Shown: positions 7,567 to 17,566, numbered from the stretch's first letter. The stretch is 64,000 nt of DNA from Schizochytrium sp. TIO01 (GCA_004764695.1 SMSO01000037.1:1588747-1652746), one strand, 5' to 3'. The notes: generated by a model not told the origin, from the sequence alone. Numbers and translations: made by a program.

Positions 7567-10500
7567 TCACACTGATTCTGAGTCACAGGATTCGGTGGAC
7601 CATGCTGCAATGGCACGATGGAGCTTGTTTGGGAAAACGTCTGGTTCAACATGAACATTGGTGAAATCCATTCCTGTTACAATCCAGCGATCTAGTAATT
7701 CTGGTAACTCCCAGGGCCCACGTCGATCAAAGATAACTGGTTGATCCATTGGCTCTCCACTAAATGCCCGGAGGCTGAGCCGCTTCGAAAGTCTGTCAGT
7801 CGGCAGGTCTTCGTACTTGATCGTTTGAGCAACCTCTGAGCGAATTTGGCGTTCCCACTCTGGCCAAGATACCAACCACTGCTCGAACTGCTCGTCCGTG
7901 ACGCTCAATGCAGCTTCTTTAGCCACGTTAATGTCCTCTTCCGTGACGTTCACAAACGAACGGTAGAGCATAGCTACAGCGGAGACTGGAAGATCAAGCT
8001 CTTCCCGAAGTGAAATTTCATAGCGAAGATACACACATACATCATCTTGAGTAGCACCCGGATGGTGCGCAGCATGTTCTCGAACGATTTGAAGCCTCAT
8101 TACCCTTTTCCCTAAAGCGCGAAGAGCCTCACGGTCTCCTCTTGCATTTATAACAAGGGTGATTAAATACATATCATTGAGCGCCCAGATAGGTTTGTCT
8201 GAACAAGAATCGATTGCGTCAGAGATTCGGGACAAAAGCTCTTCACGAACACCATCAGGATCATCTTGCAAAGTTTGAAGAAGTTCCACCACCCGCTTAG
8301 CTAGTCCTTCTCGTAGATCTGGACGACGAAACTCAGCACTTCGCAACAGAAGGTTCAAGAAGGCTAATACAGAGGAGTGATAAAAGGAATCTAATACTTC
8401 TTGAAGAGACAAATGAGATTCTAGGTGTGCTTCATCTTCCCAAAACTTCACAGCCTCTTCCAGAGTCTGGTGTTGTCGTGGTCGACCACCCTTCGAGTCA
8501 CCGAGATCGAGCTCAAGCAAGGTAAATAAAGCGCCGCACCTCGCACGGAGAATCTCAAGATCGAAATCTCTACCAATAGGAGAGGTTTCATCTACTACAA
8601 TACTCTGTGCATGTCGAATAACTGAGTCAGGAAGAGTGTCCAAGCTGCTGCAATTAGTGATCTTGATGCTGGAGGTCACACGGACGGACTCTGGGACTAC
8701 TTGCAACTCAGGGTTATCTTCCATGGTAAGAATACGGACTCGAAGGCGCTCAGGAAGGTGAACAAGACGTGTACAATCGCAAATATCAAGTGATTGACGA
8801 ACTCGAATATTCGGCGGGAGTTCGACAAGTGATGGTAGTTTTCGCAACGCAAGCGAGCCTCTCAGGTTTATCACGTCTGGCAAAAGCTCCAAACTTGGAC
8901 AAGAGTCAACGCGAAGGTTGCCTCGGCAGACCAAATCAGAAGGCAAACTGATCAGATTGAGGCATTGGTATACCACGAGGTCGCCAACTTGAATACCATG
9001 AGGAATCGTAAGCATGCCACACTGCTCTATACGTAGAACTCGCTTCACCTTGAAAGTTGAGCCTGAGGTTTCGAGTTGCGAGCATTGTACAATATGACAC
9101 ATGTCGACATTCATTCCTTCCGGAAGCTTCATGAGCCCAACATTTCTTAACGAGACACTTTGCCTACCACTTGGATTAAAAAATGAACTTGGGAGTGAAT
9201 TCAGATTTGTACAGCTGTATATAGAGCACTTTTCACGAACTTGTACTCCCTCAAGAATATGCGTAAGGGAGGGCATATTCTTAATATAAATAGTGTCAAC
9301 ACGAACACCTGATGGAATTGCTTCAAGGGGGCAGCGTTTTGCTTTGAACAAATTTCGTACTACCAAATCTTCAGGTAAGTCATACAGTTCAGTACAACCT
9401 GCTATAATCAGTTCAGACACCTGTAGGCCTTTTGGTAGTGTACGCAAGGGAGTGCTGCGAATACGAAGGTGCTCATTGATGCGTAAATGTCCCAGTTCAT
9501 TTAGGCTCTCGCAATGTTCAATAACGAGTTTCTCCAACTGTAAGATGTCAGGCAACTGTCTGAGAGATTTACAATGGGTCAACACGAGTGTCTCTGACAC
9601 TTGTATACTTTCAATACTTTCGAGATGAGCGCAGTGGTGTATCTCAAAGTGGAGAAGATCGATTACAGTTGGCAATTCCGTAATTAACGGCAGACCGTCC
9701 AAAACCAGCATTGTGCTGATCCGCATATCTGCGGGAAGGAACTGGAGGTTTGGACAACGTTTGACCACTAGTGTTGAAAGACTCAGGTTAGCTGGGAGCT
9801 CTGATATTTCGATGCAATCTTCAAGATGAATACCTATACCTTGCCATGGAAAGTTTGATGAAAAATGTATTGCGCTTGGCCACTTGCGTAAGGTAAGTTG
9901 ACCACAAAATCGTATTCCCTTTCCAAGGGTGAGGGTTGAGGATGTATGATGTTCGAGTTTCAAACCATCAATTGTAACTGTGTTCGAAATATCTACTGAT
10001 CCCTGACTTCGGTGATGGACTTCGAGATGAATCCACTTAAGTAATGCAGTGAGAACAGCAAGGTCTGAGTGGACCAGCTTTAGGCCCACGGCTGTAAGAC
10101 GGAAGCTTTCAAGATCAATAGCAGTCCCATGTAGTAGAATTTCCCTGCAACGCTCAGCTCGGTGTTCAATCGACATAGATAAGAGAAAAGTAAAGAGGCT
10201 CTCCAAAGTCTTTGACGCATCATTGCCTTGAGAGAAAGCAATTGATGTCAGCGTGTTGGACTTGGCAACTAATCCAACGAGCGGTGTAAGTTGTTCTGAC
10301 GCCAAATTGCATTCTTGAATGCGCAGTTTCTGAATGCTGTTATGCTTTTCTAAGGCATTTGTAAGTTTTCCCATTGTGCTTAGAGACATCGGAGTGCGTA
10401 CGAAATCTAGTTCCTGAAGCCCAACATTTCTTCCAATGCTCTCTGCGAAGGATGTAAAGCCGCTAACTGACATCGTCTTTTCAGCTTCCTCTGTGCAGAA

Positions 10501-12786
10501 TCTTAATTTCTCTACCCGTAAAGACTTGAGTTCTTCCATTGCAAGCGTGTCACAGAGACCTGCCCACGGCATACCAAGATCACCCGCTGATACTTTGATC
10601 TCGAGCTTCCTCAAAGTAAACGGTGAGGTGGCTGTAATTGCCCCAAGCATTGCATCCAACAGATCAGTAGAGCTGGTTACTTCTAGTTCGTGGATTCCGC
10701 CCAAGCCAGATCGAAAGGCACGCATGAAATGCTGCTTGTGCGAAGTCGAGTCAATGCATACACAAAGTCTAGATGATGATCGGGATGCCAGCGACTTCAT
10801 GAAGCGTTGAGCATAACCAGCTCTCTCGGCTGCTGTACAAGCTGGTGCCGACGAAGGACCCTGACTAAGATTCAACCGGCGAAGTTTAGATATTGTCCCA
10901 TCTTCAGTTCCGAAAGCAGGTAAGTCACGTAATGCTTCCTTGTACAAATTGTTGCTACCAAGATCAAGCGATTGTAGTGAAACATTTTCCTGTAATGCTG
11001 CAGAAATAATATCCCAACCTTCATTAATTGAATTGTAACTTAAGTCGAGGTGCTTAAGCACAGCATTTTGGCGTAGCATGTGTTGCAAAGAATCAGTAAA
11101 GTCCTCAGTGAGGCAGTTTGATGCTAAATTGAGGCCTATAAGACGATGATTTTCAGAGAGCTGCACCATTGCAATTCGCCCAAGAAGGTCGTTGATTTCG
11201 TTTGCAGAGAGGTCCAAAAATAATAATCTAGAGTCCGGACCTAGGAGATCTATCCATGGTGGTGCCACTGTGTCTTCAGCATTTCCAGCAGGGACAATAC
11301 CTGAGATACCAACCAAATTTTTACTCAGGTTGAGAGATTGCAGATCGCCTTTTCGATAGACCAGAGCAGCAGCTAAGTCTCCAGCGCCGCGGTCCGATAT
11401 TCCAGTGTCACTGAGATCAAGAGAGATAAGGGACGGTAAAACCCCGTTAACAAGCTCTTTACATAGCGCCGTGCAGCCGGAGTCCCCAAGCTTGCTCTGC
11501 GAAAGATCGAGATGCCGGACACCATGAAAGGATCGGCAAAGAAGAGTTACGCTATGTGGCCTTTGGTTACTCTCCAGGCATGTCAGCCCAGAGAGCAGCA
11601 ACGAGCGCACTGAATTATTACTACGTCTTTCGGAAATCTTCCGCAGCGCTGAGCGAAATGAATTCTCCTTTTGACGTGCCAACCAGCTAGAAATAGGGGT
11701 CGCCTGGGCATATGGTTCGAATGTGAAATTTGGCCCAAGGTTGACTGTTACCGATGAAACATGGTGACGTGCAGAGGCCACTGAAAGTGCAGGGACAATA
11801 CCTTTCCAAAGAGCAAAGTCGTTAAATGCAAGGCCACACGGTTTCTGCCATTGACCATTTACGCTGAAATACATGACTTTTTGATCCAGGTCAACATAGC
11901 AACCAATAATATCGCCCGTTTTGCATCGTCGGCCAAACTCTTCCGCACGAGAATCGGCGATAATCTGAGCCTGAGAAGGGTCGTAAGCCCAACTGTAGAG
12001 GTTGTCGCCAACACCAGCCCCATGACCATCTTCAAAAGATGTTGCAACCCACCAAGTATCTGTCCACCCGATTCGGGCAGATGCCCATGAAGCCTCTCCA
12101 CACCACCCTGAGAGATCAACTTCGTAGTAAAAGCACCCTCGCCCTGTACGAAGTGGAGCCATTTCTTTGAGTGCTACAGTTGTAAAAGCCCCAGAAAAGG
12201 TGATATGAACTTTGCCATCTCCAGAACGCTCAAATTCGGCAGATCCAGACAGAACTTTGAACGGAGCCTGTCCCGATACCTCGTATGTTGAGGATAAATT
12301 AAGGCCTTCGCATGACGAGGTTCTATTTGCATCGATCAAGAGTGAAGCAAGGGTTTGTCCACTGAGAAACTCAGCGCCCTCAAGGTTAATAATGCGAGGA
12401 GCGTGATTTCCGCGTAGCGTTTTGGACAACTGCGCACTAACTTTTGTGGACAAAGTGCACCGTGAAAGATCAAGAAGATCAAATGTTTTTGTTTTGCGTA
12501 ATGCTGACCACAATTCGCGGCTATCAAGAAATCGGACTAGAAGATCATCTGGGCTTACAATTGCACCAAATTCATCCTGTGTGAGCATATAGAGGATTGC
12601 TCGCCGCAGGTGGATGTCCTTTTCGCCTTCAAGTTCATGGACACCATCGCCAAGGCCCAGTCGATCTTTATGACGTGATTCTGTAACCATGAGAGCTCTT
12701 TCACCAAGAAATCGTGCAACACCTGCAACTATACTGTTGCGTGTAAATGTAACGCGACGACTTCGCCGCTTTGACCCGTCGCTCAT
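7567..12786 (-). CDS. 1739-aa LRR-SPRY-LRR-LRR protein with C-terminal NEL-type (IpaH/SspH-like) E3 ubiquitin ligase domain and U-box-like tail
   Basis: Uninterrupted ORF. SPRY motifs (FYYEV, RIGW, GVGDNLYSWAYD, GDIIGCYVDLD, FSVNG, VNLG) at about 11720-12150. RI-like LRRs (LDLSQSKLGDSGCTALC, LDLSDTGISDRGAGDLA) at about 10230-11620. A second LRR class (LPxxLxVxxLxIxxCxxL) at about 8600-9930. NEL motifs (LEEAVKFW, DAIDSCSDK, ALGKRVMRL, DDVCVYLRYEISLREELDLPV, MLY, WPEW) at about 7830-8466. Confidence 0.88.
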   Translation of the reverse strand: MSDGSKRRSRRVTFTRNSIVAGVARFLGERALMVTESRHKDRLGLGDGVHELEGEKDIHLRRAILYMLTQDEFGAIVSPDDLLVRFLDSRELWSALRKTKTFDLLDLSRCTLSTKVSAQLSKTLRGNHAPRIINLEGAEFLSGQTLASLLIDANRTSSCEGLNLSSTYEVSGQAPFKVLSGSAEFERSGDGKVHITFSGAFTTVALKEMAPLRTGRGCFYYEVDLSGWCGEASWASARIGWTDTWWVATSFEDGHGAGVGDNLYSWAYDPSQAQIIADSRAEEFGRRCKTGDIIGCYVDLDQKVMYFSVNGQWQKPCGLAFNDFALWKGIVPALSVASARHHVSSVTVNLGPNFTFEPYAQATPISSWLARQKENSFRSALRKISERRSNNSVRSLLLSGLTCLESNQRPHSVTLLCRSFHGVRHLDLSQSKLGDSGCTALCKELVNGVLPSLISLDLSDTGISDRGAGDLAAALVYRKGDLQSLNLSKNLVGISGIVPAGNAEDTVAPPWIDLLGPDSRLLFLDLSANEINDLLGRIAMVQLSENHRLIGLNLASNCLTEDFTDSLQHMLRQNAVLKHLDLSYNSINEGWDIISAALQENVSLQSLDLGSNNLYKEALRDLPAFGTEDGTISKLRRLNLSQGPSSAPACTAAERAGYAQRFMKSLASRSSSRLCVCIDSTSHKQHFMRAFRSGLGGIHELEVTSSTDLLDAMLGAITATSPFTLRKLEIKVSAGDLGMPWAGLCDTLAMEELKSLRVEKLRFCTEEAEKTMSVSGFTSFAESIGRNVGLQELDFVRTPMSLSTMGKLTNALEKHNSIQKLRIQECNLASEQLTPLVGLVAKSNTLTSIAFSQGNDASKTLESLFTFLLSMSIEHRAERCREILLHGTAIDLESFRLTAVGLKLVHSDLAVLTALLKWIHLEVHHRSQGSVDISNTVTIDGLKLEHHTSSTLTLGKGIRFCGQLTLRKWPSAIHFSSNFPWQGIGIHLEDCIEISELPANLSLSTLVVKRCPNLQFLPADMRISTMLVLDGLPLITELPTVIDLLHFEIHHCAHLESIESIQVSETLVLTHCKSLRQLPDILQLEKLVIEHCESLNELGHLRINEHLRIRSTPLRTLPKGLQVSELIIAGCTELYDLPEDLVVRNLFKAKRCPLEAIPSGVRVDTIYIKNMPSLTHILEGVQVREKCSIYSCTNLNSLPSSFFNPSGRQSVSLRNVGLMKLPEGMNVDMCHIVQCSQLETSGSTFKVKRVLRIEQCGMLTIPHGIQVGDLVVYQCLNLISLPSDLVCRGNLRVDSCPSLELLPDVINLRGSLALRKLPSLVELPPNIRVRQSLDICDCTRLVHLPERLRVRILTMEDNPELQVVPESVRVTSSIKITNCSSLDTLPDSVIRHAQSIVVDETSPIGRDFDLEILRARCGALFTLLELDLGDSKGGRPRQHQTLEEAVKFWEDEAHLESHLSLQEVLDSFYHSSVLAFLNLLLRSAEFRRPDLREGLAKRVVELLQTLQDDPDGVREELLSRISDAIDSCSDKPIWALNDMYLITLVINARGDREALRALGKRVMRLQIVREHAAHHPGATQDDVCVYLRYEISLREELDLPVSAVAMLYRSFVNVTEEDINVAKEAALSVTDEQFEQWLVSWPEWERQIRSEVAQTIKYEDLPTDRLSKRLSLRAFSGEPMDQPVIFDRRGPWELPELLDRWIVTGMDFTNVHVEPDVFPNKLHRAIAAWSTESCDSESV

Positions 12787-13101
12787 TTTTGTTTGTCTCT
12801 CTTGAGTTTCAAAGATGTCCTATAGGTGGTCTCAATATTGCAGCCCTGCTCCTCTCGTACAGACCGATGACAGTGACTTGAGTGGCAACCTTCACGTTTA
12901 TATTGTGCTACTCCGGTAAGGACCTACTTTTGGGACGTCTCAAAAAATGAAGCAGTCACTTCTTCGAACTGCTGAGTTAATGCCGATGAGTTGAATACCT
13001 TTTCCACGGCACTGACAACACTTGACCTTCAAGCTGTTGTCCCGGATTTGTGTTCTGCAATGTTGTTCTTTTCACGGGTCTAACTCAATGGTTTGCTGCT
13101 T

Positions 13102-16643: not shown

Positions 16644-17566
16644 ATGGCGCCTGCCGCGCTGCAGGAGGCAGCAGATGCTTTGGCTTCCGTCTCAGAAAAC
16701 GACAAGTGGAATGCAGTAAAGGTACGTGAGGCAAAACCAGTAGAGTATTTTATACTGGATTCAACCACCAGGAAAGGAGACTTGCGAACAGCCAGCCCTT
16801 GGCAGAGAGAGCCTGGTTTGTTGAGACTCAGCTCACGTGCATACCTCGATCGAGGCTTTTGCATTACTACAGCCCATTGAAGGTTCAGATTGCTGTGCTA
16901 TAGTGCGCAAAAAGCATATATCTTGATACCGTGCTTCTTCAAATAAGATCACTAACATTTTGCGCAAGTTTATTGAAAACACAGCTCACTCTATTATTCA
17001 ATGCAGTGATTGGTTTCGGGTTCTTCATTGGATCTCTATTTCTAGACTCGAAATGGGGCAGTGGAGCATCTTTTCAAGCTGTTTTCACCTCTATGATTCA
17101 TGAAGTTTACACTTTGTATGTGCTGCATCTAGTAAACCGTCAAGATATTGGAGGTCAAGCTGATTTCCTGGGAGGAATCAATGTAATGATGAACGTTCTT
17201 CTTCTGCAAACTGCGGCCCTATGGGGGGACTTAGCCGGCGGACTTAACATTACCAACGGGACTATCTGTATTGTAGAGGCTTCTACTTCAGAACGCTTTA
17301 TTGCTGTAGTCTCAACCCTCCTTTTTATTGTTCATCTGGCCCTTACAGGTATGGTCGTCTTTTGGAGGAATGATCTTGTGCGTAACACAACATATGTTCA
17401 ATACAACCAGCCTGCAGATTTTGAAGCTGGTCATCACAGCAGGGTAGATGTGCAAGCTAACATAAATGCATCCCCGAGTTACCAAAGCGGTGGTCACCCC
17501 GGAAATCAGCAACATCCCAAGAGACAATTTATTATTGATGATGAAGATGCAGACGCAGAACTGTGA
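16644..17566 (+). CDS. Two-exon gene (16644-16721 + 16985-17566) for a ~219-aa four-TM membrane protein of unknown function
   Basis: Donor AAG|gtacgt at 16722, branch-like cactaac at about 16950, acceptor acag| at 16984. The phase-0 join gives ...KWNAVK-LTLLFNAVIGFG... Four hydrophobic segments and a hydrophilic C-terminal tail. Confidence 0.75.

Follow-up and report, generated by a model that had tools for sequence, protein, structure and literature searches.

A probable NEL-type ubiquitin ligase gene resident in the nuclear genome of the thraustochytrid Schizochytrium sp. TIO01

Analysis of a 64,000-nucleotide stretch of the Schizochytrium sp. TIO01 genome (GCA_004764695.1 SMSO01000037.1:1588747-1652746; here called the window) revealed a single-exon gene at positions 7567 to 12786 on the minus strand that encodes a protein of 1,739 amino acids (aa) with a NEL domain, the HECT-like, cysteine-dependent ubiquitin ligase (E3) domain of bacterial effectors such as IpaH of Shigella and SspH/SlrP of Salmonella. 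The gene very probably belongs to the nuclear genome of this thraustochytrid protist, and its product is probably a large cytosolic multidomain NEL ubiquitin ligase. Reviews up to October 2026 describe NEL ligases as purely bacterial, from proteobacterial pathogens and without eukaryotic counterpart (PMC9320238, PMC13720258). The original prediction, made from the window alone, had likewise held that no eukaryotic NEL ligase is characterized, which agrees with the searchable literature; the one report that mentions NEL-like domains in a eukaryote does so by computation only (PMC7145615).

A NEL domain with an intact catalytic site

The Pfam NEL model (PF14496; IPR029487) matched residues 1472 to 1654 with an E value of 1.8e-28 and a score of 99.9 bits (cut-off, 24), and the match spanned positions 28 to 222 of the 223 in the profile. 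A phmmer search of all Protein Data Bank (PDB) sequences returned NEL ligases only (IpaH7.8, IpaH9.8, IpaH3, IpaH1.4/2.5, SspH1, SlrP, and SspH2), with E values of 1.5e-11 to 7e-7 over residues ~1431 to 1663. The catalytic domain spans residues 1438 to 1655 (positions 7822 to 8475, minus strand), and its predicted structure shows the all-helical NEL fold. The NEL assignment of the original prediction was thus borne out by the profile search and by the fold.

The series of ordered IpaH-like blocks quoted in that prediction lies entirely in register in the phmmer alignments (query/IpaH): LEEAVKFW/LADAVTAW, DAIDSCSDK/DATESCEDR, LGKRVMRLQIV/LGREMFRLEIL, DDVCVYL/DEIEVYL, MLY/MRF, VTEEDINVA/VTANDLRTA, and FEQWLVSWPEW/FTDWFSLWGPW. 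The claimed catalytic motif, Cys1528-Ser-Asp1530 (C-x-D; 8197 to 8205, minus strand), was correctly placed, with Cys1528 at 8203 to 8205 and Asp1530 at 8197 to 8199. It aligns on the Cys and Asp of the IpaH block ESCEDR, and both residues are invariant in the 32 sequences of the family alignment. The downstream Asp1581 (8044 to 8046, minus strand), in the DDVCVYL block, aligns on the first Asp of IpaH DEIEVYL and is at least 90% conserved in the same alignment. Also as described beforehand, leucine-rich repeats (LRRs) lie directly upstream of the NEL domain, as in the IpaH/SspH class. The flagged interval, 7830 to 8466 (residues 1441 to 1652), covers the NEL core and leaves out a conserved module further downstream at 7582 to 7782. 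By profile, fold, and cysteine within a C-x-D motif, the domain belongs to the NEL family. The protein itself stands outside the secreted-effector class, which comprises bacterial genes with an N-terminal secretion signal and delivery into a host, since its gene resides in a eukaryote.

Residency of the gene in the thraustochytrid genome

The window sits on a 5.0-Mb contig of a 64-Mb assembly with 37 contigs. Its other long open reading frames (ORFs) encode PQ-loop, SPX-VTC (VTC4-like), CPSF-type beta-CASP, CH-domain, IQCH, TFIIS-domain, WW/B-box, CoA-transferase, and phosphoglucomutase (PGM) proteins. These neighbours and the matching codon usage agree with the earlier claim of a eukaryotic chromosome with housekeeping genes: the GC content of the gene (0.465), its GC content at third codon positions (GC3; 0.404), and the correlation of its relative synonymous codon usage with the pooled neighbours (r = 0.84) all fall within the range of the neighbours, and GC3 of the NEL part taken alone is 0.394. 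The NEL domain is fused in frame with a SPRY domain and with ribonuclease-inhibitor-like (RNI-like) LRRs. A full-length collinear orthologue (P0002) exists in the thraustochytrid Hondaea fermentalgiana, misleadingly annotated as "Ryanodine receptor". The two proteins share 48% identity over 1,768 columns with 3% gaps, and the NEL core is the best-conserved part (77%).

The locus also recurs in independent data. Between 93 and 97% of its sampled sequence words are present in six contig sets from four studies, and the DNA-like run X16 holds 95% of them. Contigs of three further runs tile positions 7597 to 12772 at 99% identity or more with zero joints or indels, so that neither an intron nor a misjoin is indicated.

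Domain layout of the protein

The ORF comprises 1,739 codons plus a stop codon, with zero internal stops. Its product consists, in this order, of RNI-like LRRs with an embedded SPRY domain, an array of short LRRs, the NEL domain, and a U-box-like module. The SPRY domain (PF00622) covers residues 219 to 342 (11761 to 12132, minus strand; E value, 8e-13; 49 bits, against a cut-off of 26.3). RNI-like LRRs of ~28 residues each follow at residues ~400 to 640 (10867 to 11589, minus strand) and extend on to about residue 960; Pfam matches in this part (LRR_6, LRR_8, and LRR_4) are weak and all below their own cut-offs, and the 28-residue periodicity is seen directly in the sequence. The array directly before the NEL domain, at residues 985 to 1400 (8587 to 9834, minus strand), contains about 20 repeats of 20 to 21 residues with the consensus L.v..C..L..LP..l.v, its LxxLP anchors being spaced 20 to 21 residues or multiples thereof. 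No signal peptide or transmembrane segment was found in the 1,739-aa protein. The precomputed domains of this protein (P0001) and of its Hondaea orthologue also include PF27087.1.

An expanded family in thraustochytrids

The original prediction had pictured a single gene with possible paralogues in relatives. Relatives do carry family members, in Hondaea and Thraustochytrium, and the single-gene picture gave way to a set of ~19 NEL loci across the genome, part of a family that is thraustochytrid-wide. The Pfam NEL model matched the genome 19 times on 11 contigs, and 17 of these matches had E values below 1e-20 in open frames of 517 to 3,468 aa. All 18 genomic copies that were read keep the block D-[AST]-C-x-D-K/Q-P/V, which includes the catalytic C-x-D. 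Local copies matched the query with E values of 1e-46 to 1e-79, compared with ~1e-11 for IpaH. One copy (L018; C31:2872556-2873105) is interrupted by a TAA stop and breaks off past its LECELKDR block, and is probably a decaying paralogue. Three NEL genes (L005, L007, and L016) form a local tandem cluster within 17 kb (C24:1949952-1966773), L005 and L007 being close relatives in the tree.

An exhaustive HMMER scan of 1.84 billion cluster representatives gave 713 matches at E values of 1e-3 or lower, 77 of them below 1e-30. We distinguished two tiers. In tier 1 the motif is C-x-D-K-P-I-W-A-L-N-Q, E values lie below ~1e-27, and the alignments include the C-terminal tail. Tier 2 shows S-C-x-D-R-V/I instead; its E values range between ~1e-28 and 1e-17, and in many cases the match is confined to the NEL core. 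The short-LRR type found in the query also occurs in the consensus sequences of proteins from both tiers. Named members of tier 1 come from Hondaea ("Ryanodine receptor", "Disease resistance protein TAO1", and "RPP5") and from JGI eukaryote sets, and one is found in the MMETSP0199 transcriptome of Thraustochytrium sp. LLF1b. Since poly(A) selection is used for MMETSP libraries, this implies mRNA expression for at least one member of the family.

Several family members carry further domains. SPRY also occurs in P0004, P0008, P0010, P0011, and P0031; P0043 (3,458 aa) has SAM repeats before the NEL domain; and P0023 combines TPR_12/TPR_10, NEL, and a protein kinase behind NEL. These SPRY, SAM, TPR, and kinase fusions are eukaryotic in style.

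A U-box-like module behind the NEL domain

The earlier domain picture ended at NEL. Past the Pfam boundary, however, about 70 more residues are conserved in all paralogues (consensus tDL.G.p..DPV......W...dLl.hWv.TG.Df.N), corresponding in the query to residues 1669 to 1735 (7582 to 7782, minus strand). In the model of the NEL region this part is predicted with confidence to form strands and helices, whereas the IpaH tail is helical. Modelled alone, the module reached a predicted local distance difference test score (pLDDT) of 84 and a predicted template modelling score (pTM) of 0.70. Its best Foldseek matches were the U-boxes of LubX (U-box 2), Prp19 (TMt, 0.70; root mean square deviation, 2.9 Å), and E4A/E4B, with E values that were weak (0.2 to 2), which is expected at a length of ~60 residues. 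Sequence comparisons were weak as well, though in register: hhalign of the module against the genome's own U-boxes gave a probability of 57%, and the family profile matched the UBE4B U-box with an E value of 0.82, aligning DPV on DPV and TG.DF.N on PTDPFN. At E values up to 10, the Pfam U-box model (PF04564) had no match in 10 paralogue tails and 10 bacterial or tier-2 proteins, and its matches in the genome fell on nine loci, none of them a NEL gene. No Cys or His column is conserved in the module, which fits a U-box over a zinc RING, and the predicted structure has the RING/U-box fold without zinc ligands. By this predicted fold we call the module U-box-like, without counting it among the members of PF04564.

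Matches to the tail occur in proteins of Rhabdochlamydiaceae and in tier-2 proteins, there with a more canonical signature (RCPITLEPL...SPV... and DICPYLQD.P.RPV...YDYDAF). No tail match was found in the NEL proteins of Salmonella, Yersinia, Bradyrhizobium, and Pseudomonas. The module may serve as an extra docking site for a ubiquitin-conjugating enzyme (E2). A predicted complex with a UBC4/5-type E2 encoded in the same genome (L031:1489-1929) scored 0.00 without controls; this neither supports nor opposes binding.

Phylogenetic placement and origin

A maximum-likelihood tree of 115 NEL domains was computed with IQ-TREE (LG+C20+F+G4 by posterior mean site frequencies; unrooted), with support from the Shimodaira-Hasegawa-like approximate likelihood ratio test (SH-aLRT). 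The thraustochytrid-type sequences, including the 17 intact local copies, form one clade with a support of 100, whose stem measures 1.31 changes per site. A larger clade (97) unites them with tier 2 and two Rhabdochlamydiaceae proteins, and the opposite side (97) holds the classical effectors (SspH2, SspH3, SlrP, and the Yersinia, NopM, Noviherbaspirillum, and Pseudomonas sequences). The U-box-like extension is restricted to the larger clade. Local paralogues interleave with sequences of Hondaea and other thraustochytrids, so most duplications are older than the split of these genera. A tree of the NEL core (202 columns, LG+G4) had the same topology, with a support of 95 for the classical split; the eukaryote-type clade received only 67 with a long-branched record from Durusdinium included.

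Tier-2 sequences come mostly from metagenome contigs, often as tandem paralogues of 550 to 870 aa, and lack eukaryotic fusion domains; judged from these sequences, they look bacterial. A metagenome scan with the tier-2 alignment yielded three loci. L021 (Ga0207655_1002431) encodes a bacterial 1,688-aa protein with ToxA_N (the N-terminal domain of dermonecrotic toxins), LRRs, and NEL beside a penicillin-binding protein, and is of the classical type without U-box-like tail; L022 has a NEL domain identical to that of L021; and L020 lies on a 6-kb marine contig where the context, an M17 peptidase, is uninformative. A tier-2 LRR-NEL-U-box-like protein filed under "Acer saccharum" (P0098; 30-kb contig) is probably encoded by microbial DNA in a plant assembly.

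The placement fits an old bacterium-to-protist transfer followed by expansion. What speaks for this direction is that the named eukaryotic holders fall within a single order, compared with a wide range of bacterial ones. The transferred gene appears fully ameliorated, and its arrival old rather than recent. Most likely, an LRR-NEL-U-box cassette would have been acquired long ago from a bacterium akin to the Rhabdochlamydiaceae-like NEL carriers, then fused to eukaryotic domains and duplicated to ~19 loci per genome. The original prediction had guessed at an intracellular bacterial donor and had asked whether the domain nests among bacterial sequences: the closest named bacterial relatives are indeed the intracellular Rhabdochlamydiaceae, which makes such a donor plausible, and the tree places the clade beside them and tier 2, while donor and direction are what we infer from trees without a root.

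Comparison with known ligases

Compared with IpaH of Shigella and SspH1, SspH2, and SlrP of Salmonella, the thraustochytrid protein is encoded and kept by a eukaryote, has no secretion signal, and has three times their length; SPRY and RNI-like LRRs precede its NEL part, and the U-box-like module follows NEL, where the effectors have helices only. Identity is ~21 to 25%, and the catalytic block reads C-x-D-K-P here and C-x-D-R-V in the effectors. Closer are the Rhabdochlamydiaceae (P0176 and P0178) and tier-2 proteins, whose NEL domains are the nearest relatives of the eukaryotic clade in the trees and which have the same cassette of C-x-x-L-x-x-LP LRRs, NEL, and U-box-like tail. They differ in their size of 500 to 870 aa, the absence of eukaryotic fusion domains, the frequent tandem arrangement on short contigs, and the more canonical U-box signature (CPITLE...PV and DICPYL...RPV). 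Some tier-2 proteins, for example P0156, P0159, P0125, and P0103, are encoded on contigs of 80 to 180 kb. With the bacterial U-box/RING mimics (the C-terminal domain of AvrPtoB, LubX, and NleG) the module shares no Pfam-detectable sequence similarity, and unlike them it comes after another E3 domain, one that depends on a cysteine.

The TRIM ligases of animals (RING, B-box, coiled coil, and PRY/SPRY) follow the same logic, in that SPRY is joined to an E3 in an expanded, diversifying family. The Pfam scan of the query found no RING, B-box, or coiled coil, and E3 chemistry and origin differ, so that the likeness is one of analogy only. A 2019 paper reported NEL-like domains in NLR-like (nucleotide-binding LRR-like) genes of Klebsormidium by computation and read them as a horizontal transfer (PMC7145615). 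By their description these are set apart by lineage and NB-ARC context, and that report contains no family-level, structural, or catalytic-site analysis.

Proposed mechanism and alternative explanations

In NEL ligases, an E2-ubiquitin conjugate passes its ubiquitin to the catalytic cysteine, and the LRR domain of the effectors binds the substrate and autoinhibits the ligase (PMC9320238, PMC13720258). By analogy, the thraustochytrid protein would be an active, substrate-gated transthiolating E3. A UBC4/5-type E2 would hand ubiquitin to Cys1528 as a thioester, from which it would reach a substrate lysine; the short-LRR array would bind the substrate and, as long as none is bound, keep the ligase autoinhibited; a second recognition surface would be formed by the N-terminal part with SPRY and RNI-like LRRs; and the U-box-like module may dock the E2. 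NEL and U-box-like module together could then act as a two-site E3, one site docking the E2 and the other carrying the thioester. To our knowledge, such a mechanism has been described for no ligase.

Several points weigh against a resident and active ligase of bacterial origin. Ligase activity is attributed by analogy for every family member. Expression of this particular gene leans on the three tiling runs, which are only guessed to be RNA and fit low-level transcription, and the U-box-like assignment is structural and not seen by Pfam. When 185,579 species genomes of bacteria and archaea were scanned with a pattern from the tier-2 alignment, the single match was a distant one, in a Myxococcales metagenome-assembled genome (28% identity). 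The trees being unrooted, the direction of transfer depends on the narrow eukaryotic and broad bacterial spread. This spread is itself touched by three tier-1-type proteins in Durusdinium trenchii records on contigs of 11 to 28 kb, which are either true dinoflagellate genes, extending the family beyond thraustochytrids, or labyrinthulomycete contamination. The three (P0064, P0071, and P0133; CAK9112590.1, CAK9112310.1, and CAK9086939.1) carry the names "Importin subunit alpha", "SlrP", and "ipaH4.5".

The protein might keep NEL as a pseudo-enzyme or scaffold that binds partners via LRRs and SPRY without ligating ubiquitin. Besides the analogical status of the activity, this is favoured by the DPV motif of the query's U-box-like part, which has Gln where most paralogues have Asp, and by the strain differences in the gene (five non-synonymous and three synonymous), which are too few for measuring selection. 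Nevertheless, we consider it unlikely: the C-x-D is invariant, a D-x-C-x-D-K-P block is present in nearly all of the ~80 cluster representatives and in every local copy read, conservation between the two orthologues is highest in the NEL core, and the truncated L018 shows what decay looks like.

Rather improbable, too, is a reversed transfer, in which NEL would be ancestral to eukaryotes or at least to protists and bacteria would have taken the LRR-NEL-U-box cassette from a host. The lack of a root and of identified tier-2 organisms leaves room for it, the U-box fold and the C-x-x-L-x-x-LP type of LRR are otherwise typical of eukaryotes, and some LRRs of the family match models of plant R-protein LRRs. 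However, the named eukaryotic holders are only Thraustochytrida and the doubtful Durusdinium contigs, bacterial holders range over Enterobacteria, Bradyrhizobium, Pseudomonas, Noviherbaspirillum, Myxococcales, and Rhabdochlamydiaceae, and the eukaryotic clade is a single long-stemmed branch inside that diversity.

Thraustochytrids feed via an ectoplasmic net and some are parasitic, which, together with the large and diversifying family, would suit a protein exported to act on prey or host cells like a eukaryotic effector. For a 1,739-aa protein without signal peptide or transmembrane segment, in a family whose fusion partners SAM, TPR, kinase, and SPRY are intracellular signalling domains, this is very unlikely. 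A bacterial contaminant or chimeric assembly, suggested by a family otherwise known from bacteria only, is effectively excluded by the in-frame SPRY and RNI-like LRR domains, eukaryotic flanking genes on the 5-Mb contig, host-like codon usage, the orthologue in a second genus, and the independent assemblies.

As to the role of the ligase, the family is large and diversified and its sensor-type domains vary, which points to regulated proteolysis or immune-like surveillance, though speculatively. Possible, but doubtful as a whole, is that a captured bacterial effector has become the chassis of a surveillance or regulated-degradation system endogenous to thraustochytrids, in which diversifying LRR-NEL-U-box ligases with SPRY, RNI-like LRR, TPR, SAM, and kinase sensors would act as analogues of TRIM and NLR proteins and as two-site E3 enzymes.

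Surrounding sequence

Upstream of the gene, the 6.6 kb between positions 12787 and 19440 have an unusually low ORF density for this window and contain a single ORF of at least 200 aa (211 aa; 16931 to 17566). Rfam and tRNA scans of the window gave no matches.

Implications

The raw NEL match is not new, as PF14496 hits on Hondaea proteins are already precomputed in public databases. In the literature searched, we found no paper on thraustochytrid NEL proteins or on the combination of NEL and U-box, and the family, its architecture, the tail module, and the phylogenetic placement appear undescribed. The findings correct misleading public names such as "Ryanodine receptor", "TAO1", "RPP5", and "Importin subunit alpha". 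They also define a NEL subclass with a U-box-like tail that occurs in chlamydia-like bacteria as well and raises the question of how its members recruit the E2. Thraustochytrids are a culturable protist group, some of them genetically manipulable (Aurantiochytrium, for example, can be transformed), and would offer a non-pathogen system for NEL regulation, including autoinhibition by LRRs. If the reading is true, a eukaryote can adopt an effector enzyme and diversify it for its own use.

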